Shown piece after piece: positions 33,125 through 60,300 of a stretch of 64,000 nucleotides of DNA; within the stretch, counting starts at the first letter, position 1; every line of letters starts with the position of its first letter. This DNA is from Scyliorhinus canicula. Its lineage: Eukaryota. Both the position numbers and the translations under genes were made by a program. The stretch lies in assembly GCF_902713615.1 (NCBI RefSeq), contig NW_024055720.1, forward strand, positions 186,001 to 250,000, written 5' to 3'. Below the pieces are notes generated by a model, which saw nothing but the letters and a program-made list of their open reading frames with translations, searched no databases and was not told the origin of the DNA.

Positions 33125-33433
33125 CAGACGCGGTGATGTTGTGAATTTGGGTGACCTCTTCATGAGTGACCTGGCAGGTATAGACCGCTTTGCTGAACCA
33201 TTCCCCAGCGGAGACTGTCAGCCGACTGCTCGCTGAGAAGTTCCTGCTAACTTCACAGGCGGGAGAGGTGACAATTCCTGAACCCATGGCTTGTCCATTC
33301 TTCAGCCACTTCACCGTCATTGACTTTGGATGGAAATCGTTGATCGAACAGACGATGGTTGCAAATTTCTGCCTTGTGATTTCTTCACTGGAACTCACGG
33401 TGAGGAGAACATTTGGAGCATAAATTCTGGGAC
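33125..33433 (-). CDS. IGHM: IgM CH2 exon
   Basis: ttcttgaag|...|gtaag, 309 nt, (C)[42 protein letters not shown]...[19 protein letters not shown]. Confidence 0.97.
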
Positions 33434-33641: not shown

Positions 33642-33941
33642 ATTCCATTCCAATGCTCTTGTCTGAGACGCTGTGTCGAACCTCACAGCTGATGTTGCTG
33701 CATCCCCCCTCTGACTCGGTGATGGTTAACTGGCTGCTCAGGGTGTAGGTTCCCTTCTTGTTTTTTACTGATGGGTATTTCTTAACTCCAGTGGTGATCA
33801 GCTGCCCATCGTTCTTCCAGGTGAGGCTGGTGATTTCTGGGGAGTAGTCCATCGCCAAACAGCCGTAGGTCACGGAGCCGTCGGTGTTGTGTTGCTGACA
33901 GGAGGAGACCAGACTGTAGAGAGTGGGCGGAGTCGGTGTCA
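33642..33941 (-). CDS. IGHM: IgM CH1 exon
   Basis: ttctcccccag|...|gtaagt, 300 nt, (V)[41 protein letters not shown]...[17 protein letters not shown]. Phase-1 junctions match the J donor. Confidence 0.97.
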
Positions 33942-36385: not shown

Positions 36386-36499
36386 GCCACCTCCGTGTTC
36401 TGAGCCACATTCGGGGGCCAATGGACATCAGTTTCGCTCCAGTTCTCTATTCCTCACTCGCTGCAGACGCTCCCTTGCCGATTTCCTGAGCATCAGTGA

Positions 36500-39190: not shown

Positions 39191-40127
39191 GTAGGTGAGT
39201 GATCATTCCCAGGTTCTCCCAGCCCATTAGGACGATGTTTCTCTGGATGAGTTTCCGCTCAGGCTCAGCTTTCCGATGCCTGTTGTCCACAGCCGAGCTG
39301 GGGGCTCCTCCATTCGGCTCCACCACCCCCACCTCTTCCTCTTCCTCTCCATCGATCCTGTCCTGATTCTCCACATTGATCAGCTTTCAGTAACACCGGC
39401 TGTGTGCAGTCAGACAGCAGTGTAGATCACTGGGCAGCTGCTTTAATACTGTCAGTAACACCGGCTGTGTAAAGTCAGACAGCAGTGTAGATCACTGGGC
39501 AGCTGCTTTAATGTCGATGTAATTTAATTTTCCACAAAACAATTTAGAACTGGGACAATAAACATTCCTGTAAATTTGCTGATTTTACTTTTGCAAATGG
39601 GATTTTTCTGCCCGTTAAATTCTTGTCATATTGTATACGGAGAGTGTGTTGTGTTTATTCATTATTGTGATGTAGGCGTCTGTGGCTGGGTCAGCATTTA
39701 TTTTCCATCCCTCATTGCCTTTGAGAAGGTGGTGAGCTTCCTTCTTTAACCAGTGCAGTCCATGTGGGGTTTCCCCGAGTCAGTTCCATGGTTTTGAACC
39801 AGCGGCAGTGAAGGAACGGGGATATATTTTATAGTCATGATGCTGAGTGACTTGGAGTTGAGCTTCCAGTTGGCGGTGTTCCCATGTGTCTGCTGTCCTT
39901 GTCCAGATGGCCGCTGTCATGGGTTTGGAAGGTGCTGCCTCAGGAGACATGATGATCTTCCACAGCGGATCTTTAGATGGTGGGCAGGCTTTGGGGTGTC
40001 AGGAGATGAGTTTTTCACCTTTGACCTGTTCTTCTGGCCTCAAATTTTATATGACTCGTCCAGATCACTTTCTAGTCCATGTGAACCCCCAGGAGGTTTC
40101 GAGTGGGGATTCAATGATGGTAATGCC

Positions 40128-41076
40128 TGTAGCCATGCTGGCCACGCAAAATGGACACTGAGCCAAACTAAAATAGAAGACTGCTGGGAAACAGACAGTT
40201 TAGCCAGAACAGCAGTCTGCAAAGAGCAGTTTGCATTCTGCAGCAGCAGAAACCAGTTTGGGCTCAGGTGAAAAGACCTTAGCTAGGTGCAAATGGCAAA
40301 ACACTTTGCATGCTAATGAGGCCATCAGACTTGAACACCCACACAATAGATACATTTGGTTCTGAATGGACACATTCTAATCAAGACCCAGACATCGAGG
40401 CACCAGAAACTTCCAAACAAAAGGACATAAGAAACGCCCCCTCCATCACGGAGACCCCCTCGCATTGGGGAATTAATCCAGTATCGATAAGAAATTGATC
40501 CAATAGGTAGAGCCCGCCCGAGAAGAGGGAAGGACAATGGAACCCCTATAAAAGATAGGGACCTCGTGTTGTCCGGTCTGTTAAACCCGTGCTCCGGCTC
40601 TGACTGACATCTTGCATCCTGACTCCAGCCGTTGAGCACCAGCCGCCGAAACCGTAAGTTCAAAGCTCGCTACACGATCCAAGCCCACTAGACTCCCAAG
40701 TACCAGAACGCTTGCTGAAGGCTGCAGTGCCAGACCAGGACGAAGGCCTCGTTCTCTGACCTTGCCTGTTCCTGTTAGATAAGTATTCTGTTTGCTTAAG
40801 TTTAGTTATAGCTTAGTCTCTTAGTGTGTGCATGAGTATTTATTATAACTGTATAATAAATATTGATCGTTTGAACTTTACTAATCGGTGTATCGTCTTT
40901 ATTACTTTGAACTTGACCTTGGAATACTTGTGACGTTGCCTATACGGCAACTGGCGACTCCAGAGCTAAATAATTACATAGAACAGAGCCTAGCAGTGTT
41001 AAGCACACGTCGAACTCGGAGGCGTGTTAATACACTCCAATAAACGCGTTTTACGCCCATAGTAAAACGTGCAACA
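40128..41076 (+). repeat. 5' LTR
   Basis: TG...CA termini, TATA-like cctataaaa at about 40545, AATAAA at 40855 and 41039. I found three substitutions versus the 3' LTR by eye (40411, 40664, 40674). Confidence 0.97.
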
Positions 41077-41081
41077 TTTAG

Positions 41082-41100
41082 TGGCGACATCCGCCGGGAC
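41082..41100 (+). other. Primer-binding-site-like sequence TGGCGACATCCGCCGGGAC
   Basis: Starts 5 nt after the 5' LTR with TGG, complementary to tRNA CCA. I could not assign the cognate tRNA with confidence. Confidence 0.6.
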
Positions 41101-41395
41101 CCTGTTGTAAGTGGAAACACCACAGTGTCCAGGACCCTGAAATTTGAATTAGAACTCCAAATTGCAGAGAAAGAAAGAGATCACAAGTATTCAAGGTGTT
41201 CAAAATAATAAGCGAAATTCGGAAGTGTGTTTAGTGCATGCGTACTAACAGGGCTGTAAGGTAAAACTGAAAGCTTTTTGTTGCGACAAACTTTCGGTAG
41301 TTTTGTGATCGGAAAATAGCGTAAGCCGTACCCTTTTTACGAAACACCACCCCAACAACCCCCTGTTCCAAATTATAAAAAGAGAGTCAGAGGAA

Positions 41396-43144
41396 ATGGC
41401 CATGCAGGCAATGGAACGTCTGATGGATCCAGCAAAGTTTGTGGTCGCAGCGACCAGCAGCAGTAGCAGGGTAGGCCAGTGTCCCACGTGGGAGCTGGAA
41501 CTCCGCAAATATTTACAAGGAAAGGGATGGCCCCTTTGGAAAGAGTTTTGTGCAAATGAGGAGACAGGTCCCGGGAGTATAGGTCATACTTGGTGGGAGA
41601 ACCTCTCTCAAATACACAAAAAGAGTTTAGGTAAAGCACGCAAGCCGATGGCAATTGTGTCCTGCTTGGCACAGTTGCGAGGCGCAGAGGAGGTCATCAG
41701 GACGCTCCGGGCAGATTTAGAGGAAAGGAACCGAATGAGTAAGGTCGATGTCAGGGACGTCGAGAAAGAAAACCTGGAATTAAAAGGGAAGTTGGCAGAG
41801 AAGGATAGAGAGGTGGATGATGCCAAGAGGGCTCACCAGTCTTGTCTAGCTCATCTGAGCAGTTCCCAGACCCAGTATGAGAAAGCCTATCAGGACGTGC
41901 AACGTGCCGTTCTGATAAGACAGGAATCGGAAAAGCAGGTGGAGGCATTGCAGAGGCAATGTTCCGATCTCAAAGCAGCTTTGAGAGCACTCCATGCTGC
42001 AACAACCGAACAAAGACAAAGCACAGTTGACCACGCGAAATGCAGGAAACAGATTGCGGAACTGCAATCTCTGCTTTCGGTGCAGAATGGCTTCCAAAGC
42101 ACCTTTGGAGCTCAGTTAGATGGGGAAAATGCCCCAGATTGGCAGGAATTAAGCGAGACAGCGCAGCGTTATGTTCAGGGAACATGTGCGCCCGCAGCTC
42201 AGCAGAAACGACAGGCACCCCAACCCCCCACAGCTCAGATCATAACCGCACCCATGAATCCCGTAACCACACAGAGGAAAGCCGAATCAGAAGGCGCCCC
42301 AGACATAACTTACACCACCCCTTTAACAGTAACCCAGCTAAGGGACGCTTGTGAAAAGATCACTCCGTTCCTCCCCACCGCAGACCCCCACCAGTTCTTC
42401 GCTAAAGTAAAACAGCAGGCTACCATGTACGGCCTGGATGAGAGAGAGCAGGTTAAGCTCACCGTGCTGAGCTTAGACCAGAGCGTAGTAGCAGCCCTCC
42501 CCGACCCACAAAACGTGGCAGGAGGCAGCCTAGAGGAGATACACACTGCCATTTTAGATGCCATCGGGTACAATAGAGGTGACCCCGTAGAAGGATTGAA
42601 TAAGTGCAGGCAGAAGAGATCCGAACACCCCACAGCATTCGCAGGAAGGCTGTGGATTCATTTCAGCGCAGTTTTCGGACAGCTAGATAGAGCGCATTTA
42701 ACCCGCGAAAACATGGTTAAGTGGACGCGCACAATTATCTCACACGCAACAGAAGCAGGACAGAGCGCTTGCAACAGTTACGACCCCTCAGAAGAGGCCC
42801 ATAACGAGAAATGGGTCCTGAAAAGATTGTCCCGCGCTTGGGAGCAATCGCTTCAGGCAAAAGGAAAGGTTAGATCCCCAGAAGAGGCTCAGGCTGCTGC
42901 AGATATCCAAGCAGTCAGAGAGCACCAGAAGCCCGCATGGGTAAATGACGGCAAGAGCAGCCCACAACAGAAAGGACAGGAATGCTATAACTGTGGACAG
43001 TTAGGGCATTGGGCTAAAGAGTGCCAAGCACCCCAGCGATCTCAGAGAGGCCAGCAGACAGGCACTCTGAACCGCAACAAAGCAAAACCCATCCACAATG
43101 TAGCAGTACAGTCAGGACCCACCAATGTGGACGAGACGAACTGA
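41396..43144 (+). CDS. gag: Gag, 582 aa, with a long coiled coil and one CCHC zinc knuckle
   Basis: Open ORF after the leader. CYNCGQLGHWAKEC at 42983-43024. No N-terminal Gly2. Ends in TGA. Confidence 0.9.
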   Translation: MAMQAMERLMDPAKFVVAATSSSSRVGQCPTWELELRKYLQGKGWPLWKEFCANEETGPGSIGHTWWENLSQIHKKSLGKARKPMAIVSCLAQLRGAEEVIRTLRADLEERNRMSKVDVRDVEKENLELKGKLAEKDREVDDAKRAHQSCLAHLSSSQTQYEKAYQDVQRAVLIRQESEKQVEALQRQCSDLKAALRALHAATTEQRQSTVDHAKCRKQIAELQSLLSVQNGFQSTFGAQLDGENAPDWQELSETAQRYVQGTCAPAAQQKRQAPQPPTAQIITAPMNPVTTQRKAESEGAPDITYTTPLTVTQLRDACEKITPFLPTADPHQFFAKVKQQATMYGLDEREQVKLTVLSLDQSVVAALPDPQNVAGGSLEEIHTAILDAIGYNRGDPVEGLNKCRQKRSEHPTAFAGRLWIHFSAVFGQLDRAHLTRENMVKWTRTIISHATEAGQSACNSYDPSEEAHNEKWVLKRLSRAWEQSLQAKGKVRSPEEAQAAADIQAVREHQKPAWVNDGKSSPQQKGQECYNCGQLGHWAKECQAPQRSQRGQQTGTLNRNKAKPIHNVAVQSGPTNVDETN

Positions 43145-46100
43145 CGGTGTTCGGGCTCCCCCACTTGGGTCTGTGACACACTATGGGACTCATCAGGGAG
43201 GCCCGTAGTCACGGCAAAAGTCAAAGGGAAGCCCATAGAGTTACTGTGGGACACAGGAGGATCCCGCACCACCATTAACTCCACAACCACGGCACACTCA
43301 GACACGTGGCCGACCACCTCCACCATCACACTTAGCGGGTTCACCGGACACTCGCAGCAGGGACATATCACAGCACCCGTAGCGATCCAGCTAGGGAACA
43401 TTAGCACAAGGCACCCCGTAGTTCTAGTAAATCTTCCCCGGACAGCAGAGCACATCCTGGGGATAGATTTTATGAACGCTCACAGCTTGTCGTTCGACCC
43501 AGTGAACCAGTGTGTCTGGCGAATGGCGAGATCAGACAGAGCCCCAGCCACCCTCACAGTAGGAGACTACGCTAATCGGATTAGCGCAGTGGGAGAGTAC
43601 TCATTCGACCTGACTACACTCCACACCGACAGACAAATTAAGGCCCTACTAAACAAACACAGGACAGCATTTGCAAGTCACCGTCATGACTGTGGCAGAA
43701 TGACTGGACAAGTTCATGTTACCGGACAGGACCCCCGACCGCAAAAGCAATATAGATTTCCCCTCGAGGCAGAGGTGGAAATAGAAAAAGTTATAGGTAG
43801 CTTGTTGGACCAAGGTGTACTGAGAACGGTAGCCTCCACCAACAATGCCCCTATTTGGCCAGTGAGGAAGCCCGATGGATCATGGCGTCTGACCATTGAT
43901 TATCGGGAACTCAATAAAGTAACCCCCGCAGTAGCCCCAACGGTAGCTACTAGTCCCGAGACCATGCTCAAGCAGGGTCTCAACGCCAAGTACTTCACGG
44001 TATTGGACATCAGTAATGGATTCTGGTCAATACCATTGGCAAAAGCGTGCCAATACAAATTCGCATTCACTTTTAAAACACAGCAGTACACGTGGACATG
44101 CCTCCCACAAGGATTCCACAATTCACCCTCCATTTTCCACCGACAGCTGGCAAGTGGATTAGAAAAATTTTCCCGACCCGAATGTCTGGTACAGTATGTA
44201 GACGACCTACTACTGCAGACAGACACAAAGGCAGAGCACATTTCGCTTCTGGCCGAACTCCTGGAACTCTTAACTGAAATTGGCTGTAAAGTTAACCCGA
44301 AAAAGGCCCAAATATTCGAAAGTAAAGTGATGTATTTGGGATCAGTCATCACGCACGGCAAACGCGAGATCGAATTCAAAAGAATTGATTCGATTGTCAA
44401 ATTGCCCCTTCCCCAGAATGTTTCAGCCCTCCGGTCGTTTTTAGGACTGGTTGGCTATTGTCGGAACCACATCGACGGATTCGCGACAAAAGCCGCCCCA
44501 CTTTCAGACCTCCTTAAGAAAGGAGCCCCCTGGGAATGGCTTCCGCAGCATACAGGCGCTGTGGAAGAGTTGAAACGAGCCCTTAGTGCAGCACCCGCGC
44601 TGCTAGTCCCCGACCAACTTTCACCGTACGCAATCGAGGTAGCTAGCACAGATCTAACCCTCTCGGCCGTGTTGCTTCAAGAACGGCACGAGCAGCTAAG
44701 ACCAGTGGCTTATGCCTCCCGACTGTTAGACCCGGTAGAACAAGGATTTTCAGCCTGTGAGAGGCACCTCCTTGCTGTCTTCTGGGCAGTGCAGTATTTC
44801 TCATACATCACCGGACTAAACCCCATCACCATTCTAACCGAACACACACCCACACAGCTACTACTAGACGGTCGACTGAAGGGCGGTTCAGTTAGCCAGA
44901 TTAGGGCAGCTAGGTGGACCCTACTTTTACAAGGACGGGACATTACTGTAAAACGGACACGCACCCACACATACTTAGCAGACAACCTCCAATACCCCGG
45001 ACAACCCCATGACTGTGAAATTGTAGCTCCCCTGCATAACACAGGACCCTTTTTAGCAAAAACACCCCCCAGGAAGATAGGGAACCCGAAACAAAGCCCC
45101 CAGCCCACAGACACGTGTGGACCCTTGAGGATTTATGTAGACGGTTCCTCCACAGTTTTAAATGGTGAGCGTATCACAGGATGCGGCATCTATGTAGAGG
45201 ACGCGCAGGGGCGCGCTCTCGAAGAGATAGCTCTTAAGTTACCAGGTCACTTAGGCGCGCAGGCAGCAGAGCTAGCAGCCATAGCGTACATAGTGGACCA
45301 CCCCGATTCTTTCCCCAGCCCAGCAGACATATATTCAGACAGCTTATATGTATGCAATAGCCTAACAGATTTTCTGCCCCTGTGGAGGACACGAGGTTTT
45401 GTCTCCGCAGACGGAAAACCCCTTCCATCAGCCCCCTTACTCCAGCATATCCTAGAGAAAGCGAAGGACAGGACCTTCGGCATAATAAAAGTAAGAAGCC
45501 ACCATAGGTCATCACCCCCTGGGAATGTAAAGGCCGACGCGTTGGCTAAGGCAGGTTCCAGGAGAGGACACTTATGGACCCCCCCTGCTAGCGCACCAGC
45601 TAGCGCCCCTGTGAGCGCAGTCCAAGTCTCACAGACTGATATTAAAGATCTCGTGGCAGCACAGAAACAGGACGGAGACCTCAGGGAGGTTTTCAAGGGA
45701 AACTTTGTGCCTGCTTACGAGCACTTTAAACACGCACTGACCACACATGAGGGTGTGATCATTAAGGACCAACTTTATGTGGTCCCACAGCAGGACAGGA
45801 ATCAGATGATTGCCTTGTTCCATGACGGACACGGGCATCAGGGAATTGATGCAACAACGAGGCACCTCAGGCAACTCTGTTGGTGGCCTAATCTCAGGAA
45901 TGATGTAACGCACTACATAGAGAATTGCCTGATTTGTGCTCAGAATAACCCGGAGAGGTATTCTAAGAAAGCACAACTTCGGCATACTCGCCCAGTTAAC
46001 GGCCCTTGGACAAACCTCCAGATCGACTTTATAGGTCCATTGCCCCCTTGTAGGAATGGCTATAAATACGTTCTGGTGGTGATAGATACCTTTACCAAGT

Positions 46101-47371
46101 GGGTAGAGGCATTTCCCTCACGAACAAATACAGCAAAGACAGCTGCAAAGATCCTGACCCACCACATCTTCACGAGATGGGGTTTACCCCGAAGTATCGA
46201 TTCGGACCAGGGATCTCACTTTACAGGACGGGTCATGAGGAACGTCCTGACAATATTCGGAATCAAACAGAACTTCCACATTGCGTATCATCCACAGTCC
46301 AGCGGGATTGTGGAGCGCATGAATCGGACCCTAAAAACTACCCTCAGGAAAATGGTCCAAGAGAATAATTCCACATGGGATTCAGTGCTCCCATTTGCAC
46401 TTATGTTCATAAGGAACACTGTCTCCACATCGACAGGATACACACCACACACACTCATGACCGGACGCCCTATGAAAGGTACAGAATTCCTTTTAGGACT
46501 GGACATGACAAGCCCCGAATTGACGGCCCTCACACATGAAAAGGCAGTTAAAGATCTAGTTGAGACTGTGAGGTCTGCACAGCTCGCAGCCGCAGTCCAG
46601 CTAGGGAAACGCCGACAGCAACGTACTGCCTGTTTCAATAAGACCGTACACACCACAGAATTCCAGGTTGGGCAACAGGTAATGTTATCTGTTTATAACC
46701 CCAGCAGTTTTTTGGCTCCAAAATATTCCGGTCCCTACTCAATTTCGGACAAAATTAGCCCCTCCGTTTACAGGATAAAGTATCCTAATGGGAAGACCGC
46801 GTGGTTCCATATAAACCAGTTAAAGGCATATGGAACACAGGCCAACCATGCTCACCATGTCCTGCTGGATGCAGCAGAACACTTCACCCCGCCCACCAGA
46901 GACACTTTTCCACCATCCCCCTCACAGACCAGTTCATCAACGGACTCGCCAACGACTCCGCCCACAGACCACTACAGACCACGCCCCGACACGCCCACAA
47001 GCTGCCACAGCAGAGACAGCAGGACTGACACTGACTCTGAAGACAGCGACACCACACAGCCATACAGCCCACACTGCACCAACTACGACCCCGACTCCAG
47101 TGACCCCATGGAAGTCACCTACCTCAAATATCCAGAACCACCACCCGACCCCGACTACCCCGACAACACACTCGACGCTACACAATGGCACAGGGACAAT
47201 TCCTACAGACTTGTCCGCAATGACGAGAGTGACCCCCGGTCACACAATTCCAAAATAGCATGCCTGATCCACACAAGGGTGTGGGATCCGGGAGAGCAGG
47301 ACGACACGGTGTCTGACTCCCGACACGGCAACCCCTTTGTGACCCTGTTCACAGAGGCAGAATCAAAGTGA
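43145..47371 (+). CDS. pol: Pol (protease, RT, degenerate RNase H tether, active RNase H, integrase, C-terminal extension), in frame with gag
   Basis: No stop from 43145 to 47368. Protease LLWDTGGS. RT LDISNGFW, LPQGFHNSP and YVDD (44195-44206). Tether PVAYASRLL. RNase H YVDGS/AELAA/YSDS/NVKADALAK. Integrase HHCC, D-D-E core and GPY. Confidence 0.95.
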   Translation, partial: RCSGSPTWVCDTLWDSSGRPVVTAKVKGKPIELLWDTGGSRTTINSTTTAHSDTWPTTSTITLSGFTGHSQQGHITAPVAIQLGNISTRHPVVLVNLPRTAEHILGIDFMNAHSLSFDPVNQCVWRMARSDRAPATLTVGDYANRISAVGEYSFDLTTLHTDRQIKALLNKHRTAFASHRHDCGRMTGQVHVTGQDPRPQKQYRFPLEAEVEIEKVIGSLLDQGVLRTVASTNNAPIWPVRKPDGSWRLTIDYRELNKVTPAVAPTVATSPETMLKQGLNAKYFTVLDISNGFWSIPLAKACQYKFAFTFKTQQYTWTCLPQGFHNSPSIFHRQLASGLEKFSRPECLVQYVDDLLLQTDTKAEHISLLAELLELLTEIGCKVNPKKAQIFESKVMYLGSVITHGKREIEFKRIDSIVKLPLPQNVSALRSFLGLVGYCRNHIDGFATKAAPLSDLLKKGAPWEWLPQHTGAVEELKRALSAAPALLVPDQLSPYAIEVASTDLTLSAVLLQERHEQLRPVAYASRLLDPVEQGFSACERHLLAVFWAVQYFSYITGLNPITILTEHTPTQLLLDGRLKGGSVSQIRAARWTLLLQGRDITVKRTRTHTYLADNLQYPGQPHDCEIVAPLHNTGPFLAKTPPRKIGNPKQSPQPTDTCGPLRIYVDGSSTVLNGERITGCGIYVEDAQGRALEEIALKLPGHLGAQAAELAAIAYIVDHPDSFPSPADIYSDSLYVCNSLTDFLPLWRTRGFVSADGKPLPSAPLLQHILEKAKDRTFGIIKVRSHHRSSPPGNVKADALAKAGSRRGHLWTPPASAPASAPVSAVQVSQTDIKDLVAAQKQDGDLREVFKGNFVPAYEHFKHALTTHEGVIIKDQLYVVPQQDRNQMIALFHDGHGHQGIDATTRHLRQLCWWPNLRNDVTHYIENCLICAQNNPERYSKKAQLRHTRPVNGPWTNLQIDFIGPLPPCRNGYKYVLVVIDTFTKWVEAFPSRTNTAKTAAKILTHHIFTRWGLPRSIDSDQGSHFTGRVMRNVLTIFGIKQNFHIAYHPQSSGIVERMNRTLKTTLRKMVQENNSTWDSVLPFALMFIRNTVSTSTGYTPHTLMTGRPMKGTEFLLGLDMTSPELTALTHEKAVKDLVETVRSAQLAAAVQLGKRRQQRTACFNKTVHTTEFQVGQQVMLSVYNPSSFLAPKYSGPYSISDKISPSVYRIKYPNGKTAWFHINQLKAYGTQANHAHHVLLDAAEHFTPPTRDTFPPSPSQTSSSTDSPTTPPTDHYRPRPDTPTSCHSRDSRTDTDSEDSDTTQPYSPHCTNYDPDSSDPMEVTYLKYPEPPPDPDYPDNTLDATQWHRDNSYRLVRNDESDPRSHNSKIACLIHTRVWDPGEQDDTVSDSRHGNPFVTLFTEAESK

Positions 47372-48307
47372 GGTGTCCAGATGATGTAAGATAGGAATCG
47401 TTTGAGGGAAACGATGTCCTTTCTGATGGAACCTGCACGTATGTTTGTCTTCGTTTCATGTTTGTTTGTTTTCAGGAATGTAAATTGTTCAGCTGGAGGA
47501 TGGACATCTTCTTTTCAGCTGAAAAGATTGTGACCACCTCACATACACGTTAGCTTGTCTGCCGAAACTTTTGAGAACTTCGGTTTGATTGGAGATCTTT
47601 TCCAAAGTTGTAAGGCCACACGCCAAATAGCTTGTCCGCAGATATCTCTGAGAACTTCAGTGATGTCCTCAGTTGGAGCATCTTGGCTCCCTTGGTTTTT
47701 TAGGTGCCCCTCTATTCGGCGAAATAGAGGCTGCAAGTCATGGTAAACACATTCGTACCCGTTTTTTCCAGGTTACTCAGGCAGTGGACAAACGGCACTG
47801 AGGACCCGCCCTGTCTGAGAACCAACCCTTGGTCAGCCAAGCTCGGGTATGGCACAGCACGCCCTACCCGGGGATCCCATCCAACTCATACCCGTCGCGG
47901 CCCATACGCAACTCATTCGGATGTTTGTTTCCAAGTTTGTTTTCATTTTACGTTAGGTAGCCCTTCGGCCACCATCCCACATGCTATTTACATCCGGGAA
48001 CATTCGGATGGTAAATCAGCAAAGCCTGCGAGACGGCTCGCAGAAGGAAGGATTGTTAGGTGTATGCTGGTCTTTAAATTCGCTTTTTGAAAAAAAAAAT
48101 GAGGGGAGTCACAGGGTGTGACTTAGCCAGTCATTTTAAAGGGTCAATTGGGATTTGAAAGACAGATGCACTAACAAGTAAAGGTCTTAAACTGTGTATT
48201 GACAGATACTGTGCTTGATCCCAAAGGTTTCAAAGGACGAGACAGAGGTCGAAGCCAGGATTGTCAATACCGGAGGAAGAAGGAAGAGAAAGAAGAAGAA
48301 CAGCAAA

Positions 48308-48661
48308 ATGATGGAAGCCCACTTATTACTGTTTAATGTCATATGTATATGTGTGGAAACAAGACACGTTTCCCCCACAACCCCCACCGTAAATGTTAGT
48401 ACAACAAACCCCCAGTGCTCAGCTCTGATCAGCGAGGTTCAGACCTGGTGTACTAAATTCATGACGTGGTACTCCATGTCCTACATAATCGAATCACTGT
48501 TGGTGATCGCGATCCTCATCGTCCTAGTGCAGACCCTCAGGTTGAGGAAATGGAAGAGGAGAGCCTCTCGTTCCAGCACCTCACCCATCTATAGAGTGCA
48601 ATCCCCCATCTTCGGATTCCACCAAACCCCTCAACCCCTCACTGATTACAACACTCTGTAA
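48308..48661 (+). CDS. Small predicted single-pass membrane protein (117 aa) at the env position
   Basis: ATG in good Kozak context, N-terminal hydrophobic stretch, NVS sequon, Cys37 and Cys48, TM YIIESLLVIAILIVLVQTL, then RLRKWKRR. Ends about 330 bp before the 3' LTR. Confidence 0.6.
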   Translation: MMEAHLLLFNVICICVETRHVSPTTPTVNVSTTNPQCSALISEVQTWCTKFMTWYSMSYIIESLLVIAILIVLVQTLRLRKWKRRASRSSTSPIYRVQSPIFGFHQTPQPLTDYNTL

Positions 48662-48990
48662 ATAAAATTCAGCCATGTATTATATTGTTCCATACTCGAC
48701 TGCCGAGTTGGGAAGTGTGATGTTGTGGTGTGAATGGTTAAGGTTTAGAGTGATTAAATGTTTAAGTTAAGGTTAAGGTTAATAGTGATAGGTAGAGGTT
48801 CCCAGTTGTAGTAATGCATGTCCTTTTGACATAGGGCCAAGTAGAAATGTTAGTTAAAATTTTTTTTCTCTTCTTCCCATAGTTTAGAACAGAGTAGAAC
48901 AGGAACTGGCAAGAGGTCAGAACACAAGGAAGGCAAAGTACATAGGTGATCCTTCACAATAGTATGATTGTGAGGATCACAAGGAGGGAA

Positions 48991-49939
48991 TGTAGCCATG
49001 CTGGCCACGCAAAATGGACACTGAGCCAAACTAAAATAGAAGACTGCTGGGAAACAGACAGTTTAGCCAGAACAGCAGTCTGCAAAGAGCAGTTTGCATT
49101 CTGCAGCAGCAGAAACCAGTTTGGGCTCAGGTGAAAAGACCTTAGCTAGGTGCAAATGGCAAAACACTTTGCATGCTAATGAGGCCATCAGACTTGAACA
49201 CCCACACAATAGATACATTTGGTTCTGAATGGACACATTCTAATCAAGACCCAGACATCGAGGCACCAGAAACCTCCAAACAAAAGGACATAAGAAACGC
49301 CCCCTCCATCACGGAGACCCCCTCGCATTGGGGAATTAATCCAGTATCGATAAGAAATTGATCCAATAGGTAGAGCCCGCCCGAGAAGAGGGAAGGACAA
49401 TGGAACCCCTATAAAAGATAGGGACCTCGTGTTGTCCGGTCTGTTAAACCCGTGCTCCGGCTCTGACTGACATCTTGCATCCTGACTCCAGCCGTTGAGC
49501 ACCAGCCGCCGAAACCGTAAGTTCAACGCTCGCTACGCGATCCAAGCCCACTAGACTCCCAAGTACCAGAACGCTTGCTGAAGGCTGCAGTGCCAGACCA
49601 GGACGAAGGCCTCGTTCTCTGACCTTGCCTGTTCCTGTTAGATAAGTATTCTGTTTGCTTAAGTTTAGTTATAGCTTAGTCTCTTAGTGTGTGCATGAGT
49701 ATTTATTATAACTGTATAATAAATATTGATCGTTTGAACTTTACTAATCGGTGTATCGTCTTTATTACTTTGAACTTGACCTTGGAATACTTGTGACGTT
49801 GCCTATACGGCAACTGGCGACTCCAGAGCTAAATAATTACATAGAACAGAGCCTAGCAGTGTTAAGCACACGTCGAACTCGGAGGCGTGTTAATACACTC
49901 CAATAAACGCGTTTTACGCCCATAGTAAAACGTGCAACA
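48991..49939 (+). repeat. 3' LTR, preceded by polypurine tract AAGGAGGGAA (48981-48990)
   Basis: 949 bp, nearly identical to the 5' LTR. Confidence 0.97.
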
Positions 49940-50744
49940 TGCCATTGAATGTCAAGGGGCGGTGGTTAGATCCGTTCTTACTGGAGATGGGCATTGCCTT
50001 CAATTGGGTGACTTGACTGTTACTTACCACTTGTCAGCCAGAACCTGATGTAGTCTCCATGTTGCTTTATTTACACATAGATTTATTCAGTGACTGCACA
50101 GTTGAAAATTGTGCTGAACTTGGTGCAATCATCTGAGAACAATCCCAGTTCAGACATTATGATGAAAAGGTCATTGATGAATAAGCTGAAGATGGTTTGT
50201 CCGAGGACACTGCCCTGAAGAAGTCTCGCAGTGATGTCCTGGAATTGAGATGATTAGCCTCCAGCAATGGAATCCATCTACCTTGGTGCTGGTTATGACT
50301 CCAACCAGCGGAGATTGTTCTCCTGATTCCCATCCATTCATTCTTTGGTTGGGCTCCTTAAGGTCACACGTTTAAATGATGCCGTGATTTGGCGGCACTG
50401 TAGCACAGTGGTTAGCACTGTCGCTTCACAGCACCAGGGATCCGGATTCCATTCCCACTTGGGTCATTGCCTGTGTGGAGTCTGCAGGTTCTCCCCGTGT
50501 CTACGTGGGTTTCCTCCAGGTGTTCCGGATTCCTCCCTCAAGTCCTGAAAAACGTCCTGTTAGGTGGTTTGGATATTCTGAATTATTCCTCTGTGTATCC
50601 GAACAGGCGCCAGAGTGTGGCGTGTAGGGGATTTTCACAGTACCTTCATTGCAGTGTTAATGTGAGCCCACTTGTGACAATAGTAAAGATTATTATGTTT
50701 ATTATTGATGTTAGATTCAGTCGCTCTCATCTGTGTTTCTGACA

Positions 50745-52570
50745 ATGTGTGTGTGTCTGCGTGTGCGTGTGTGTGAGAGGGAGAGTGTGGGTATGTGTCT
50801 GAGAGCGTGTGTCTGTGCATATGTATGTGTCTGCATTCGTGCGAGAGATGGATGAAGAGAGTGGGAGAGAGAGTATGCATGTGGGTGTGTGTGTGAGAGA
50901 GAGTATCTCTGTGTGTCAAAGAATATCTGTGTGTGAGAGCGTCATTGTGTGTATTTGTGCGAGCGAGAGGATGTGTGTGTGTGAGGGAGCAAAATAGTGT
51001 CCACAGGAGAGAGACTGTATGCGCAAAACTGTGTGAGAGAGCATGTATGCACCAAAGCATGCGAGTGAGACAGCATATGTGTGAGAGAGCATGTGTGCCA
51101 GACATCATGTTTGTGAGAGCATGTGGGTGAGAGAGTGTACGTGTGAGAGAACGTGAGCACAAGACAGTATGTGTGAAAGAGAACATGTGTGCAAGAGAGC
51201 ACACGTGCAAGAGAGCATGAGTATGAGAAAGCATGTGTGAGAGAGCATGTGTGTGAGAGAGCATGTTTGTGAGAGCACGAGACACCATGTGTACAAGAGA
51301 ACGTGTGTGAGAGCATATGTGCGAGAGAGCATGTGTGTGAGAGAGCGTGTGTGCAAGCGAGAATGAGAGAGCTTGAGTGTGAGTGAGTGTGCAAGAGAGA
51401 ATGAGAGAGCGTGTGTGTGAGAGAGCGTGTGTTGGTGAGAGCATGAGTGTGTGAGAGTGAGTGTACGAGAGAGCGTGTGAGTGAGAGGGCATGTGTGTGG
51501 GGGAGCGTGTGTGCAAGATAGCGTGAGTACGAGTGATATGTGTGTGAGAGAGCGTGTGTGTGAGAAAGCAGGTGTGGGAGAGTACATGTGTGTGAGAGAG
51601 CATGTATGCAACAGAGCAAGTGTGTGTGAAAGCATGTGCTCTAGAGAGCATGTGCATCAGCGAACATGAGTGTAAGCGAGTGAGAGATTGCGTGCGGAGA
51701 GAGTGAGTATCAGAGCGCATGTGCATAAGAGAGTATGTATGAAAGAGAGGATATATGTGTGTGAGAGAGCAGGAGTACAAGAGAAATTAAATGAAAATCG
51801 TTTATTGTCACGAGTAGACTTCAATGAAGTTACTGTGAAAAGCCCGTAGTAGCCACATTCCGGCGCCTGTCCGAGAATCGAACCGTGCTGCTGGCCTGCT
51901 TTAAAAGCCAGCGATTTAGCCTGGTGAGCTAAACCAGTCAGCATGTGTGTGAGAGAGGCCGTGTGTGTGAGAGAGCGTGTGTGTGAGAGGGTGTGTGTGT
52001 GAGAGCATGTGTGTGAGAGAGCATGAGAGAACGTGCGAGCGAGAGACGATGCATGTCAGAGAGAGTGTGAGAGAGAGCGTATGCATAAGAGAGTGTGTGT
52101 GTGAGAGAGCGGATGTGTGAGAGATGTCTGTGACAGAGCATGTGTGTGAACGAGTGTGTGCGCAAGAGATAACGTGTGCGAGAGTGCATGTGTGTGAGTG
52201 TGTGTCTGCGAATGATTGTGTATGTGAGTGAGATTGGTAAAACTTGTAAGAGAGAGTGTGTGAGAGAGTGTGAGAGGGAGATTGCCTGTGAAAGAGAGAG
52301 AGGAATAATGTGCCTGTGCCTGTGAGAGAGCGAGTGACAGTCTGTTGGTGTGTGAGGGAGATTTGGAGCGAGATAAAGTTGGAGACAGTGAGTATGTAAG
52401 AAACTGAGTGTGTGAGGCAGTGCGTGTGTGTGCCCGAGTGTGTGTGTGCGAGAGACTGTGTGTTTTTGAAGAGCTATTGTGTATGTGAGAGTGTCTGTGA
52501 GAGAGTGTCTGTGTGTTTGAGGAATAGTCTGGGTTTGTGGGAGAGAGGGAGTGTGTGAGGGAGAAACACT
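50745..52570. repeat. Degenerate (GT)/(GA) microsatellite field with an embedded SINE at 51785-51935
   Basis: gagagcatgtgtgtga-type low-complexity sequence. It is the source of several spurious His/Thr/Ser-rich ORFs. Confidence 0.9.
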
Positions 52571-55500
52571 GTGCGCATGAGAGAGTATTTAGTCTTTCAA
52601 ATTTCACTCTGAAACACAGGGGAACGAATCATTCAAACTGCTCGATTCTAATTGATAAATGGTCAACTTACGACAATAACAATTCAATAACCTTTTTGAA
52701 ATGAAACTGATATTAATTTCAAAACTCCCTTCGCCTTTCAGCTATTTCTCCTGTCTGTCTGAACTGGGCACAATGTATTATCACGGAGAATGATCACATT
52801 AAATATAACAGATTGAGGGGAGTTTAATGTCCGTGACAAAGATCCAGTGTTTGCTAAGAAATAAACAAACCAGGAAACATTCACATTGGAAACTGATGAC
52901 CTGATTTGATCCAATTTTCTAATTAAATATAATCAACAAAACAATCGAGGCGGGTCGACTCTTCAACCTGAGTAAATAAATGTATTGTTTTGTAAATTAT
53001 TTTCAGTACAATTAAACATTCTCTAATAGCTTTGATATCGCACGCCAGTGTACTACTCAATTGTAGGGTTAATTTATGTTGAATTAGTTAGTACTAATGT
53101 CACATTGCCAATTGTCAATTAGTTGACCTGTCAGCTGATTTGTACTCTATAATATAAATAATAAAACATGGTTCTCTGTAATTCAAAACCTGCTCCTGTC
53201 TGAAATTTGATAAATAGTTTGGATTTAATTAAATATTAAACTTCAAATTATCGGATGGAATAATTCAGACATGTGCAATATCTCATCAGTTTGTTAAAGC
53301 GGTACTCCCGAATTGATAAACTATTGTAACTCGAAACTATATCTCTAACAATAAAGTCCTTGGTAGTTTGTGACCAATAAAAGTGTTTCGAGATTTAATC
53401 ATTCAGCAATTCGATTAACTTTATTCTTGAAAATATTGCTTAAAGAAAGGAGATCCAAATTAATCAGTGCAACACTTAATGAAAACAACTCAGTCAGATC
53501 CTCTACAGCACTGAAACATAATCAGAAAATGATGCAGAAATGTTCTTGTTCAATTTATGATTTAATAAGAAATAAGCTTGAGGCTCAGATATAATCTATT
53601 CTTCTATTGTATAACTTGTTTTATTTCTATAATGTTATATTATGCACAGCACAGCTCTGCGAGACAGGATGTTATTATTTTTTGCAAAGCTAATATTCTC
53701 CTTTTGTAATTAAATTAATATCTTTGAATTTCAAGCTTTTACTGTGTCTCCAGCAATGAGCAGTATGAACATTCCTACAATTTAGATAAAATCATAAGAA
53801 CAATTCCTTCACTGTCAGCGACTTCCACCTCTGACAAAACTCTTTATGATTATATCAGAGACAACTACAAATGACGCTGAAGAGATAATATACGAGCTGC
53901 TGCACATAAGTAATATAATAACCGGATACATAAATTGCCAAACTGCAATATAAAACTCCTACTTAAGTAACTGCAAACGTAATCAGAGAAATAAAAAAAT
54001 AATTCAAATATATATTGTGCAACTGAACAGTGCTGTAGAATCAGTATATTATTATTAAAACAGTTTCATAAATAATCAGAAAATATTTCCAGTTTAGAAA
54101 CTTTTCTGGTCATGCTGATGGAGTGCAGAGCAGAGCAGAATTGTGAAAGGCGATTGATGATTAATGATATTAATATGAAAATATATTTGGATAATGTGGT
54201 TATAACACAGCATTATAATTGTTTAAGTTATATTAATTTTACTCACTAATTTGAAAACGTTTTAATTAAACAGTTTCAGATTGCAGTAACAAATTGCATT
54301 CTTAATGACGCCATGGTTTAGTTTAATCAGTAATCATCAGGTAAAATTTAAATATGTCTATCAAATCTTTAATTGCTTTCTTTATTTTCGAAACCTGCCG
54401 CGTTTACTCCCTACAATTGTGTTTCAAGGAGATTCAAACGCGCAAATCTTTCGACATTAAACCAGAAAACGTGTAACTGCTCAATGTCACCCAGTTTGAA
54501 CAATGCAGAAACAACGGAGAAACAGAAATCGCTTCACAAATTGTACTTATTCAAAGTCACCCAGACACACTATCTCCTCAGCAGGAAAACACCAAAACTC
54601 AACGTAAGGACTGAACTCGTTTCATTGAGAAACAGCTAAATTCTACATTCAACAGTGTGAAACGTAACATTTCAAAAACATCTGAATATCGAATCCAGCG
54701 AACCAGTTCGCCGTCAAATGTATGAATTATCAAACTAAATAGAAATACAGAATAACAGTAATATCGTTGTCAGGATGTGGGGTATGTCCAAAATATTTTA
54801 AAAACTTTACCACATTCTATACAGGTTGGACCGTATTTCAAACGCATTTAAACAGTTGGAAGGATTGATAAAAGCTGCATCCATCAATCCCACCAAGATG
54901 GAACATTGCAGAAAAGCCAGGATGTCATTGCAGTAACAAATTATGTTCGGAAAGAGCATTATAAACTGTGGCTTAATTTAATCTGCAATCATCACTTTTA
55001 AAAAACACTATAAAATCATGACTGTTTTCCACCCACAGTCGTGTACCAAGCAGTTTCAAATACGTTTCTTGTTTTCATTCAATTACAAAAATGGGACCGC
55101 TCAGTATCATCGAGTTTAAAGAATATAGAAACGCCAGAACCGTTTCACAAATTCTACTCATTCAAAATCAACCAGCCACAAACTCTTCAGCAGAAATACA
55201 GCAAATTACATCACCGAGGGGCTGAAATCGGTCTCATGGAGAACCAGCTCGATTCTACAAACACTTTCAACAGAATCAAACAGCATTTCAAGAAAATTCT
55301 ACCCACCAAATCCGCCTTTCAGCAAGTGAATGAACAATTAAAACACAGAAATATGGAAGAATATCATCAGCATTGTCAATAAGCGGGAAGTGTTCAATAA
55401 ATTGACACAGATACTTCAGCATATTTTGTGAGTATTGGGTTAGATTTCTAACACTTGTGCAGGAGATGGTAAAACCTGCTCAGATGTCGCCGAGATTAAA

Positions 55501-55802
55501 CATTGCAGAAATACCAAACTGTTTAACAGGCGTTAGGTATTTAAAGTACCCAGCCACACAGTATCCTCAGCAAATAAACACTAAATCATAACAACCCGGC
55601 ACTGAATCCCTCAGCAGAACCTTTTGTCAAGAGGCAGAATAATTCCTTTTTCAGCAGAATCACATGAAACATTACAACAAAATCTCAATACAGAATCCAG
55701 CAAACCCGCAATTCAGTGAACGGATGCATACTTAAAATAGAAAAAACTAAATAAAACAAAGACTGAAGTAAAACAGTTCATAAATAATGGAAAGGTTCTT
55801 AC

Positions 55803-55859
55803 CTGCAGTCACCGTCACCATGGTGCCTTGTCCCCAGTAGCCCAAGATGTACCAGGTAT
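55803..55859 (-). CDS. IGHJ: Joined D2-JH segment (TWYILGYWGQGTMVTVTA)
   Basis: ATACCTGGTACATCTTGGGCTACTGGGGACAAGGCACCATGGTGACGGTGACTGCAG|GTAAG. WGQG motif, donor at 55802, directly preceded by a 12-spacer RSS. Confidence 0.9.
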
Positions 55860-55887
55860 CACAGTGAGACACAGCGTGTCAAATACT
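55860..55887 (+). promoter_or_regulatory. 12-bp-spacer RSS 5' of the D2-J segment
   Basis: CACAGTG (55860-55866), then 12 nt agacacagcgtg, then TCAAATACT (6/9 consensus). No nonamer at spacer 22 or 23. Confidence 0.85.
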
Positions 55888-56182
55888 GCGGCAGACTGTT
55901 AACTGTAAAACACAGATTTAATTTCAGTGCGCTCTCAAAAAACTATGTTTCTTCCAAGAGCGAATGTGTGAGTTATTTCAGCTTGTCCTGATCACTACAT
56001 TAATAAAGAGGATCGGAACACTTTTAGACGCTCTGGGCAGGTTTAGCCTGTTGGTCAACAGAGATAAAGTGGAACATTTTTATACCTTTTTCCAAAATAA
56101 CATTTTGTTTTATTTAAACCTCATTAACATTGACGATCCTGCTGGGGTTCTGATCACCAATTTGAACAAGCTCTTTCTCTGA

Positions 56183-56263
56183 GGTTTTTGTATGAGGATG
56201 TCTCTGTGCACAGCACTGTGACCCACTGCTGTAGTCACAGTGACAGACACCCGCACACAAACT
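56183..56263 (-). other. IGHD: D1 segment (56221-56235, ACTACAGCAGTGGGT) with a 5' 12-RSS and a 3' 22-RSS
   Basis: Plus strand reads GGTTTTTGT-22nt-CACTGTG [D] CACAGTG-12nt-ACACAAACT. All three D reading frames are open. Confidence 0.95.
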
Positions 56264-56632
56264 GCACTCACTCTCTGTTCAGTTCTGCCGCTCAATATTC
56301 ACTTCAAATAGACGATTACCCCTAATCTAATTTACAATTTAGGCAACAGTTTATCAAACTCAATGTACATGGATTTTCCCAAGTATCACAATAATAAAGC
56401 GAGGATTATATCCACGTCTGTAATAGCTGAAAGTGTTAACAGTAAATGTAAACAGGCAAAGGCTCATCCTATTAGATCGATTGGTTTGTTCGGTTTTACT
56501 GTTTAATTTTCTCTGTGTGAGTTATGTAAGAAGCAGCTTGTGTTTAGATTCTGATCACTGGCATCAATATTACATTTGGATCAAGTGCTGACCTTCAGGT
56601 TAAGCTGCAAGTTGCTGAATTCCCTCTCGAGC

Positions 56633-56671
56633 TGTTCTTGTGCGGGTCCAGCCCTGGTTCCTCTCGCTGTG
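56633..56671 (-). promoter_or_regulatory. 23-bp-spacer RSS 3' of VH
   Basis: CACAGCG, 23 nt, ACAAGAACA immediately after TGT GCA AGA AAC. Confidence 0.93.
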
Positions 56672-56976
56672 GTTTCTTGCACAGTAATAGATGGCGGTGT
56701 CTTCGGTCTTCAGGTTCGTCATGGCCAAAGAGAAGCTGTTGGTTGAAGTGTCTTTGGACGCAGTGAATCGATCTTTAATTGCTGCGGCGTAGTTGTTGTT
56801 GGATGAACTATAGTAATATACCAACCACTCCAGCCCCTGCCCGGGAACTTGCCGGATCCAGAACATATTGTAGCTGCTAAGATCGAAGCCGCTGGTTTTA
56901 CAGGTCAGTGTCAGGGAGCCTCCGGGACGCCCGGTCTCTGCCTCCGGCTGAGTCAACACAACATCCGACTGGACAC
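56672..56976 (-). CDS. IGHV: VH exon (open, canonical Cys/Trp/YYC)
   Basis: tttttacag|GT GTC CAG TCG then [98 protein letters not shown]. Confidence 0.97.
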
Positions 56977-57104
56977 CTGTAAAAATATATCAAAAAGCCC
57001 GAGGATTAATGCTGGTGAAATGATTGGTGACTCTGGAACATTCCAGAGAGAGACTAACACTGAGACAGTAACAGTGAGAGACTTGGACAATAAAAACTAC
57101 TCAC

Positions 57105-57150
57105 GGGATAAGAAAGTCAGCAACAAACTGAGAGAAATGGCCCACCTCAT
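57105..57150 (-). CDS. IGHV: VH leader exon (MRWAISLSLLLTFLS-R)
   Basis: Hydrophobic signal peptide, phase-1 donor C|GTGAGT, 128-nt intron to the V exon. An in-frame upstream ATG lies at 57162. Confidence 0.95.
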
Positions 57151-57240
57151 CCTTCTGGTCATTTGGGGAAATGGTTGTGTCAGGAACTCAGTGAACAAAC
57201 CAGCTCCCGGACTGTTGGATTCGGGTCCCAGTGATCGGCA

Positions 57241-57313
57241 TTTAAATACCCGGCAGAAGGGGGCGGCTTTCCAGGCGCCGCCTGTTGATTCCCTGGTGGA
57301 GGCGGCGCCTGGA
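57241..57313 (-). promoter_or_regulatory. VH promoter region: TATA-like TATTTAAA plus a perfect 14-bp GC-rich inverted repeat
   Basis: TATTTAAA (57241-57248) about 90 nt upstream of the ATG. Arms tccaggcgccgcct (57270-57283) and aggcggcgcctgga (57300-57313). Confidence 0.6.
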
Positions 57314-60300
57314 TCCACGTCCCGCCTTCCACACCCCCAACAGAATGGACACAGAGATTTACTATAGAATATTATTAAAAGTGGATATTTATGTGTATCT
57401 GGATAGTGGTTTGTCTGACTAGATTCTTAGTGATGTCCTAATTGGTTCGATTGGCGAAATTACATTTGCGCATCTGTTAATAAAAAACGATTCCATTGTA
57501 AATCCAGTCCCTTTATTTCGACAGACAGCAGAAGGGAATAAGCATAAACAGATTGAATTCTATTGTCAGGGAATAAGTCGTCTATCAGTCTGATTTGCAA
57601 CACTCCAAGTCGCTATCCGATTTGCAAAAAAATATAATTTATCTGGGGAATTGTCAGCGATTAATTTAACTAAATGCGGGAATGATGATCACGATTCCAT
57701 TCCCAGTGTGGAACAATGTGGGTTTGGAGACAAGAAGAAACTCTCACATTACACAATGTCTCTCTTCACATTTCTGGAACTGTCCCTGAGCCTCAGACAG
57801 CCCTGTGAACATTAGCGGTAAAAGAAGCCGCTTGCCTGATAATTCAGCAGTCAGTTGACAGAGAAACATAAAATTCAGACCAGCTTTTGACGGAGAAGTT
57901 AATGAATCAGAACGGACGCGGCGATCAGCAAAGTTATCCTTCAGCATCCAAATCATTGCCGCTAATTTTATTGGTCACCGGTAGTCTCACATTCACTGGT
58001 ATTGGGAACACAGGATATCAGGACTTTGCTGCATATTACACAATATCACAAGAATAAATGTTTTATCTTCCACGGAAGCAGGTTATGAACTGGTAATTTC
58101 TCCACTCATTGGCAGCAATGAGGGAGATTGTTAAATAATAGAAATCAGCACAACTTAAACTGTACAGAACACGGTGTTAATCGGGTATAAGAGACGCCTC
58201 CGTTTGAATGAAATTAACAACTCGGAGAATAATCCAGGAATTCCGGCGGGTTGAAGGCAGTTTTAAGACTTTCTTTTAATTTAACTTATTTTTTTTTGCA
58301 ATTCTACTGATTTTATTGGGCTTGGGGATTGGATCCATCAACACCACTCACTCTCTCTTGATTAGGTTAAAAAAAACGGACTTTAACAACTAGTGACCTT
58401 TACTCGGAACGAAGATAAATTAAATAACCTCAGAGTGAACAGAGAATTCAGTGAATATATTTATTTAGATGAAATACCATCTAAAACTTTTACTTCATGT
58501 GCGACTGAAATATTTACTGTTTGAATGGATACATCCCATTTAATCCATTCATATTCAGGCTAATCTGCCCCACACAGTATTTGGCAGCAATCCAGCCGCC
58601 TGCAGTCAGGGAGGCTCGAATGTTCAATGTTGTTTACAGGAAGCATCTGGATTTTATTTTCAAAGATCTGTTTGCTCAGTACTGACCGCTTGGCTGCAAG
58701 CCAACTTCAAACTCGTAACATTGTCAATGAGGACTATTTATAAACAAATCTACCCAGCAACAGTACTGGAGATCATTTTACGTTTTAAATTGTGAACCTA
58801 TTTGAATTGTTCCCATGTCTAAGGAGAGTTATCCAGCTTCTCTTGCCACTCTTAGCAACATAGCCGGCTGAAGGATCTCTCCCACATCACATAACATTGT
58901 GATGATGGATAGAAATACAATTGGACTATCAGACAGGGGCCCATTTGTAACAAATCAACATGTATATTCTTGTCTTTTTTCCTATATGTTTCCATGGAAC
59001 GCGGGACTCACTGGCAAGATCGCCACGTGTTCCCTGTCCCTAATTGCTGTTGAACTGAGTGGTTTGCTGGGCCAGCTCAGAAGGAACTGAAGAGTCAGAC
59101 ATGTTGCTGTACGACTGAAGTCACATGTATGTGAGACCAGGGAAGGTTGTCAGATTTCCTTCATTGGTGAAGCAGAGAGGATTTCATGGTCACAGTTAGT
59201 CTGTATTCCAGATTTATTAATTTAACTCAAATTCCCCCACCGGCCATGGTGGGATTTGTTCCCGAGTTCCCACAGAATTAGCCCGGGCCTTTGGATTATT
59301 GGTTCAATGGCATTAATACTCCCCCGCCCGCCCACCCAAAAGATAAAGGGATTCCTGCTTTGATATCGGGATGGATGTTGGTTGGATGCCTGAATATTTT
59401 GATTGAGGAATCAGTGAATGGTGTTGATGGATGGATAGATGGTCTGAAAGATGTTGTTCTACATTCTCAGTATTGCGCTTGATAACTTCACAAATTAAAG
59501 CAGGTCCTCTATAGTTTGCGTCAGAATGGCACAATCGGTGGCTGAAGATTTTCTGGGTGAATTCCATCCCCAGACGATCGGGAACTGACGAGCTGGACGT
59601 CACTAAGAGGAAACTGGAGATATTCCTGCGGTTCTGGCGATTCTTCTCTGCTGATCGTGAATCTTTATCTCAAAGACAGAAAGCGGGAACATGATTACGT
59701 TGAGGAGGGACAGTTGTAATATTTGGAGCATGAGGTCATTGCATGTACAATACGTCAATCCAGATGTCCTCACCCAAATTAATGAAGACACCAGACTAAA
59801 AACATATTAAAGTGAAAATAGAAATACGGTGAAACTCAGTGGACAGCTGCAGACATTGAATTACTTTACAAAACAGTGTAATAATAAATCGGGATTTAAA
59901 GGTGCATTAACGTCATTAATACAGACATTAGATACAGACATTTTCATTTCCACCATCACTTTAAAAATCATCTCACTCTCCAGTCTGGAGATTCTGAGGT
60001 GATTACTGACCACTGCAGCGCAGAGGCTGCTGGGTAGCTGCACATAATCCTTGGTCTGGTTTTATTCCATTTCACTTTGAATTCTTTTCTTTTATAAATT
60101 TAGATTACCCAATTATTTTTTCCAATTAAGGGGCAATTTAGCATGGCCAATCCACCTACTCTGCACATTTTTGGGTTGTGGGGGCGAAATCCACGCAGAC
60201 ACGGTGAGAATGTGAAAACTACACACGGACAGTGACCCAGAGCCGGGATCGAACCTGAGACCTCAGCGCCGTGAGGCGGTTGTGCTAACCACTAGGCCAC

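Follow-up and report, generated by a model that had tools for sequence, protein, structure and literature searches.

Does the last gene segment of this IgM heavy-chain cluster, in which a D2 runs into a J with no recombination signal between them, represent a native single-D layout, a rearrangement captured from a lymphocyte, or a D2-J joint made in the germ line? The window, which is the whole stretch of 64,000 nucleotides analysed here, carries one complete IgM minilocus on its minus strand in the order V-D1-D2J-Cmu, and exactly one VH-like and one JH-like element are present within the 64 kb. The elements from the promoter region to the first D segment are as follows.

~57248-57240, minus strand: TATA-like TATTTAAAT, upstream of the leader
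57105-57162, minus strand: leader exon, with an ATG at 57162-57160 and a second in-frame ATG at 57150
56977-57104, minus strand: leader intron of 128 nt, GT..AG, read from the sequence
56672-56976, minus strand: VH exon, open, ending YYCARN / TGTGCAAGAAAC (Pfam V-set, E=2.8e-19)
56633-56671, minus strand: V 23-RSS, CACAGCG, a 23-nt spacer and ACAAGAACA (sequence and RSS scan)
56236-56263, minus strand: D1 5´ 12-RSS, AGTTTGTGT-12-CACTGTG (sequence and RSS scan)
56221-56235, minus strand: D1 coding segment of 15 nt, ACTACAGCAGTGGGT, which aligns with the Chiloscyllium D1
56183-56220, minus strand: D1 3´ 22-RSS, CACAGTG-22-ACAAAAACC (consensus match 16/16)

The translation of the leader and V is open, and the VH shares 81–85% identity with V proteins of Scyliorhinus torazame, 82% with Chiloscyllium punctatum and 76% with Heterodontus HV01. 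An RNA contig (run X15) with a joint 56973->57102 (cut +3) skips exactly the 128 nt of the leader intron; its source is either the cluster in the window or a paralogous one at least 90% alike. A simple scan of the 64 kb for recombination signals, at a threshold of at least 13/16, returned 9 matches compared with 1.9 +/- 1.4 in block shuffles. Four of the nine fall exactly at the V, D1 5´, D1 3´ and D2J coding borders in the correct orientation. The distances are 436 bp from V to D1 and 361 bp from D1 to D2J. The original prediction, which described a V with a 23-RSS, a D1 with 12- and 22-RSSs, a last segment with one 12-RSS, and gaps of about 436 and 360 bp, is thus borne out on the minus strand.

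The D1-D2 interval and the last segment resolve into five parts.

55881-56179, minus strand: D1-D2 intersegment, unique (299-nt contig with 0 mismatches in the DNA runs X1 and X5)
55860-55887, minus strand: D2 5´ 12-RSS, AGTATTTGA-12-CACTGTG (sequence, RSS scan)
55852-55859, minus strand: D2 remnant ATACCTGG, identical to the first 8 of the 10 nt of a paralogue D2
55851, minus strand: a probable junctional T, assigned from the paralogue ends
55803-55850, minus strand: JH of 48 nt, complete and untrimmed, which aligns with the Chiloscyllium J and starts at the same base as the paralogue J

The D2 5´ 12-RSS directly abuts a 57-nt coding segment (55859-55803), which is followed by a GTAAGA donor, with the GT at 55802-55801. 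In the J frame the 57-nt D2J is open and in-frame and reads TWYILGYWGQGTMVTVTA. No heptamer or nonamer lies between ATACCTGG and J or anywhere inside the 57 nt. A free D2 with two flanking 12-RSSs and a J with its own 22/23-RSS are therefore missing here, and the D2 5´ 12-RSS is the only one of these signals left. Both the sequence and the RSS scan agree with the earlier claim that the D2 3´ RSS, the J RSS and the D2-J spacer are all absent. The "about 10 unassigned nt" of that account are indeed present as extra nucleotides ahead of J; they can now be assigned, as 8 nt of D2 and one junctional T.

To establish which signal the remaining 12-RSS is, the region from D1 to the J intron was aligned with an IgM cluster of Chiloscyllium punctatum (L001; BEZZ01001580.1). 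The two run collinear through D1, its 22-RSS and the D1-D2 intersegment, and conservation is particularly high in the D2 5´ RSS and the ~35 nt upstream of it. After the D2 5´ heptamer, each begins with ATA. Relative to L001, the window lacks ~195 columns before J; what is missing comprises the 3´ end of D2, the spacer and two RSSs. The J of L001 has its own 23-RSS and lies ~200 bp beyond the D2 5´ RSS. The alignment identifies the 12-RSS of the window as the D2 5´ signal. The use of L001 as a fully canonical reference has to be tempered: it keeps the D2 5´ RSS and the J 23-RSS, and its D2 3´ RSS is unrecognisable. The sequence after its D2 5´ 12-RSS (L001:7270-7330) aligns with the D2-J spacer of another Chiloscyllium cluster, L003, and L001 may itself have undergone another kind of germline rearrangement or a deletion at D2.

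Unjoined relatives are found in the same species. Logan contigs were set on 55300-57300 at 90% likeness, from two same-species DNA runs (X1 and X5), DNA of a related species (X11) and the RNA run X15. In X1 and X5, paralogue contigs match the window up to 55852 and then continue on the minus strand with GG and CACAGCA-12-ACAAAAAGC; from the loose end at 55852 in X1, a paralogue D2 in unjoined form can be read as ATACCTGGGG, bearing a 3´ 12-RSS of its own, CACAGCA-12-ACAAAAAGC. In further contigs the match covers J as far as 55850, where CACAGTG follows at once, so that the unjoined J begins ACATCTTGG. The two loose ends, at 55850 and 55852, occur in both X1 and X5 and represent unjoined family members of the same species, from which it follows that the arrangement in the window is derived. 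The same type of D2 3´ RSS, CACTGCA-12-ACAAAAAC-, is present in Chiloscyllium VDD-J clusters (L002-L004). The paralogue alignment that had been proposed as a check thus supplies a germline D2, ATACCTGGGG, and a germline J, ACATCTTGG, with no need for N nucleotides.

These data bear on the possibility that the D2 was never present and that J natively carries a TCR-like 12-RSS. Read in isolation, the cluster has the layout V(23)-(12)D(22)-(12)J, which is legal for a native single-D architecture. However, the 12-RSS and its ~35-nt flank are conserved with the D2 5´ RSS of Chiloscyllium, where J has a 23-RSS; the first 8 coding nucleotides are those with which a same-species unjoined D2 begins; and the remainder is a complete J that is unjoined and preceded by a heptamer in paralogues. 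The original prediction had listed this architecture as an alternative, and these data effectively refute it; we regard it as extremely improbable.

We then considered the structure of the junction. Compared with the paralogue ends, it consists of D2 nucleotides 1–8, one T and the full J, with D2 trimmed by 2–3 nt; these reference ends are those of paralogues, which stand in for the ancestor of the cluster itself. The T at 55851 is the complement of the first A of J and is read as a 1-nt P nucleotide; alternatively, with the G at 55852 included, GT would count as a 2-nt P of AC. No N nucleotides are required to account for the junction, both breakpoints lie 0–3 nt from heptamer borders, there is no target-site duplication, and no microhomology is found at the D2-J junction. 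Breakpoints at heptamer borders, trimming, a P-type base and the lack of a duplication mark the D2-J fusion as a well-supported RAG-type coding joint rather than a native single-D layout. Trimming and P nucleotides have likewise served as evidence of germline joining in the nurse shark NS4 light-chain genes (PMC2193153 on PMC2193156).

A germline deletion that did not involve RAG, through replication slippage or microhomology-mediated repair, could also fuse a D2 to a J. Small deletions are common in multicopy loci, and the D2 3´ RSS of Chiloscyllium L001 seems to have been lost through some other rearrangement. Such an event would not be expected to place its breakpoints 0–3 nt from the coding/heptamer borders, leave J complete and add a palindromic base at a site free of microhomology, and this explanation is very improbable. 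The D2 5´ RSS orthology, the unjoined paralogues and the heptamer-border breakpoints together uphold the proposed D2-J coding joint within a cluster that is unrearranged in all other respects.

The minilocus would have started out as V-D1-D2-J-Cmu, the cartilaginous-fish IgM heavy-chain layout. One RAG-type recombination, which paired the D2 3´ 12-RSS with the J 22/23-RSS, would have removed ~0.2 kb and left a D2-J coding joint in the resulting V-D1-D2J-Cmu. This single event most likely took place in the germ line, as in other germline-joined shark Ig clusters. A germline origin is favored because somatic junctions are polyclonal and are not expected to form an assembly consensus, and because the junction contains no N nucleotides.

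The cluster itself is represented in independent samples. The D1-D2 spacer (55881-56179) is recovered over all 299 nt with 0 mismatches and at single-copy depth in X1 and in X5, and X1 likewise matches across the V-D1 spacer and in parts of the J intron. The presence of this unique spacer in two independent samples indicates that the cluster is real and shared. For the joint, the contigs listed (8 for each of four runs, with 657 more) include none that crosses 55851, which counts as neither presence nor absence; the contigs are short unitigs, broken wherever sequence is common to paralogues. When 31-mers were sampled from a 131-nt junction region, 3 of 8 occurred in the same-species DNA runs, a share for which multi-copy J and RSS words would suffice; the related species yielded 4 of 8, and the RNA runs 2 of 8. 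We rejected bin depths and the 3/8 word share as a readout of presence or absence of the joint, as multi-copy J and RSS sequences dominate both. An exact search for the 29-nt junction in metagenome contigs gave no match. A protein search for other joint-bearing assemblies, with a 43-aa ORF that spans the RSS heptamer, D2J and the start of the intron, gave no candidate.

Just downstream of J, the sampled individuals differ from the window. In the J-proximal intron at 55697-55765, every contig of both individuals differs from the window, and the flanks match exactly. Over 139 nt, X1 has 8 substitutions and 1 gap, and one contig of X5 skips 55646-55750. This mismatch could stem from divergent alleles, from gene conversion among clusters or from an error in the local assembly.

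The original prediction had also raised a somatic origin, in which a V-D-DJ intermediate with one rearrangement ("1R") from a B cell or thymocyte, or some other assembly artefact, became the consensus. Shark lymphocyte junctions usually bear N nucleotides. N regions are shown in the nurse shark junction figures, and V-D-DJ intermediates do occur in DNA of nurse shark spleen and thymus (PMC2435157). In the independent runs no bridging contig is among those listed and few junction words are matched, and the window differs from both sampled individuals at 55723-55765. Against this, each polyclonal junction would contribute a tiny share of the reads and should not win the consensus, and the joint in the window has no N nucleotides. 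Misassembly between paralogues follows homology and is not expected to produce a deletion from one heptamer border to another with a palindromic base. We therefore consider a somatic or artefactual source quite unlikely.

Alternatively, RAG may have made the joint in the germ line recently enough for it to be polymorphic still, with the assembled haplotype joined and others lacking the joint or differing from it. This reading draws on the spacer found in both samples, the lack of a bridging contig among those listed or of a junction-specific word, and the difference just downstream of J; it is unlikely, and in nurse sharks no joined/unjoined polymorphism was found (PMC2193153).

The sequence between J and the constant region, and the constant exons themselves, are as follows.

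33942-55802, minus strand: J-Cmu1 intron of 21,861 nt, with an antisense LTR retroelement and long simple repeats
33642-33941, minus strand: Cmu1 exon (C1-set, E=1e-13), with an AG acceptor and a GT donor
30045-33420 (approximate boundaries), minus strand: Cmu2, Cmu3 and Cmu4, open (C1-set, E=9e-20, 1e-7 and 2e-15)

The phase of the Cmu1 acceptor fits the 1-nt overhang of J, and Cmu4 carries a secretory tail that ends NSCQ. The cluster is complete and every exon is intact; TM exons were not located. Long simple repeats and a 9.8-kb LTR retroelement inflate the intron; the element occupies 40128-49940 on the plus strand, antisense to the IgM gene. Its LTRs, 950 nt long, are 99.7% identical with 3 mismatches, a TGCC target duplication of 4 bp flanks it, and it contains gag (582 aa) and pol (1299 aa) ORFs. 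By appearance the insertion is young, and it may influence how the cluster is expressed. Simple-repeat tracts at 50635-52607 and ~36400-39400 of the J-Cmu intron give minus-strand ORFs of the THTHSLS type, and a 28-nt tandem array at 38504-39166 lies within a strongly GC-skewed stretch at 36–40 kb.

The joint could be germline and the cluster nevertheless a dead pseudogene, in which case the layout would have no functional consequence. The exact Ig octamer (ATGCAAAT) is absent from ~640 bp upstream of the leader (57240-57800, minus strand), where two near-matches at 7/8 (TTGCAAAT) lie at 57627 and 57600. The V heptamer is CACAGCG, nonamers are weak, and the young 9.8-kb antisense element sits in a ~22-kb intron between J and Cmu1. 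In addition, germline-joined H-chain genes of the horned shark were not found expressed (PMC2193156). In contrast, the leader, V, D2J and Cmu1-4 are all open with proper splice sites, D2J is in frame, and the weak D2 nonamer is also conserved in Chiloscyllium. On balance a pseudogene is less likely than not, and the cluster may be used.

If the cluster with its germline D2-J joint is used, the 12/23 rule would permit V(23) to join D1 5´ (12), D1 3´ (22) to join D2J (12), or V(23) to join D2J (12) directly. Since the remaining RSSs obey this rule, the predicted competence of the locus for V-D1-DJ or direct V-DJ joining stands. Lymphocytes would need two joins (V-D1 and D1-D2J) or one (V-D2J) instead of three. 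The D2-J junction would be lost as a source of CDR3 diversity, and D2 would be locked in a single frame, which would place T-W ahead of the J-encoded YILGYWGQG. The predicted "fixed WYILGY" half of CDR3 is overstated, because ILGY and the last two bases of the preceding codon are already encoded by J in unjoined paralogues, the joint contributes 9 nt only beyond germline J, and any further join would trim D2J at its 5´ end. A stop codon lies just upstream of D2J in the J frame with no ATG between, so that no D-mu-like product is expected.

In the RNA run X15, V-family transcripts and spliced J-Cmu transcripts are abundant; none is specific to this cluster. One RNA joint, 55852->56678, has an in-frame junction and retains G-TAC-ATC. 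We rejected it as an instance of D2J use: an unjoined J with somatic P nucleotides gives the same sequence, and the inserted letters outside G-TAC-ATC are unlike the D2 remnant. Use of the cluster would mean in-frame CDR3s that retain CCTGGTACATC together with the private substitutions of the V in the window.

Other joined members of the family appear among the contigs. A V-to-J joint, 55845->56678, whose 30-nt insert is identical throughout, occurs in X1 and X5 DNA contigs and, at higher depth, in the RNA of X15, which points to a probable fully germline-joined VDJ paralogue of the same species, also seen in the RNA library. Further joined VDJ forms are 55838->56681 in the related-species DNA (X11) and 55844->56676 in X5.

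Germline heavy-chain forms known from horned shark and from the little skate are VD-J, VDD-J, VD-DJ (VD1-D2J) and VDJ (PMC2193153, PMC5192425, PMC4279169, PMC8355894); V-D-DJ is not among the germline forms given in these four reviews. The cluster in the window resembles the joined clusters of these species in three respects: its minilocus content (one V, two D, one J and one Cmu); the precise loss of RSS-flanked DNA, with trimming and a P-type base and without duplication; and the presence of unjoined paralogues in the same genome. It differs from them in that D2-J is the sole joint, with V and D1 retaining all their RSSs, so that one or two somatic joins are still needed and junctional diversity is kept at V-D1 and D1-D2. 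As a germline D2-J joint is already known within VD-DJ, a cluster joined at D2-J only is a small extension of established germline joining.

The identical configuration is known as the somatic V-D-DJ intermediate with one rearrangement in nurse shark spleen and thymus, evidence that in a shark minilocus RAG can join D2 to J before, and without, any other join (PMC2435157). Those intermediates are polyclonal, restricted to lymphoid tissue and usually contain N regions, whereas the joint in the window is the assembly consensus and has no N.

Among the four Chiloscyllium clusters fetched, three (L002, L003 and L004) are germline-joined VDD-J, in which a fused V-D-D ends in a 3´ CACTGCA-12-nonamer that faces a J 23-RSS ~0.4 kb away, and a Rhincodon typus cluster (L005; NC_063338.1) is a fully joined VDJ. 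L002-L005 belong to the same gene family as the window, with V 70–72% identical, and are joined from the V side; they keep the D2 3´ 12-RSS and the J 23-RSS, the two signals that the window has lost. This small sample (L002-L005) shows germline joining to be apparently common in shark assemblies. The IgNAR type III locus reportedly carries a germline-fused D1-D2 (Diaz et al. 2002, Immunogenetics). Like the window, that locus has a partial germline join without V and still rearranges; unlike it, the isotype is different and the join is D-D, not D-J.

The classic case for RAG activity in germ cells, and for its reshaping of antigen-receptor loci, comes from shark Ig genes joined in the germ line. 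The D2-J-only cluster described here fills the missing single-step permutation in the series VD-J, VDD-J, VD-DJ and VDJ, and is compatible with germline events following no strict joining order, as in shark lymphocytes. As such the finding is expected and incremental; it would stand out only if individuals turned out to be polymorphic for the joint, in which case it would be direct evidence that RAG is still rearranging Ig genes in shark germ cells. As a natural pre-made DJ gene, the cluster also lets one ask whether reduced junctional diversity is used, for example in early life.
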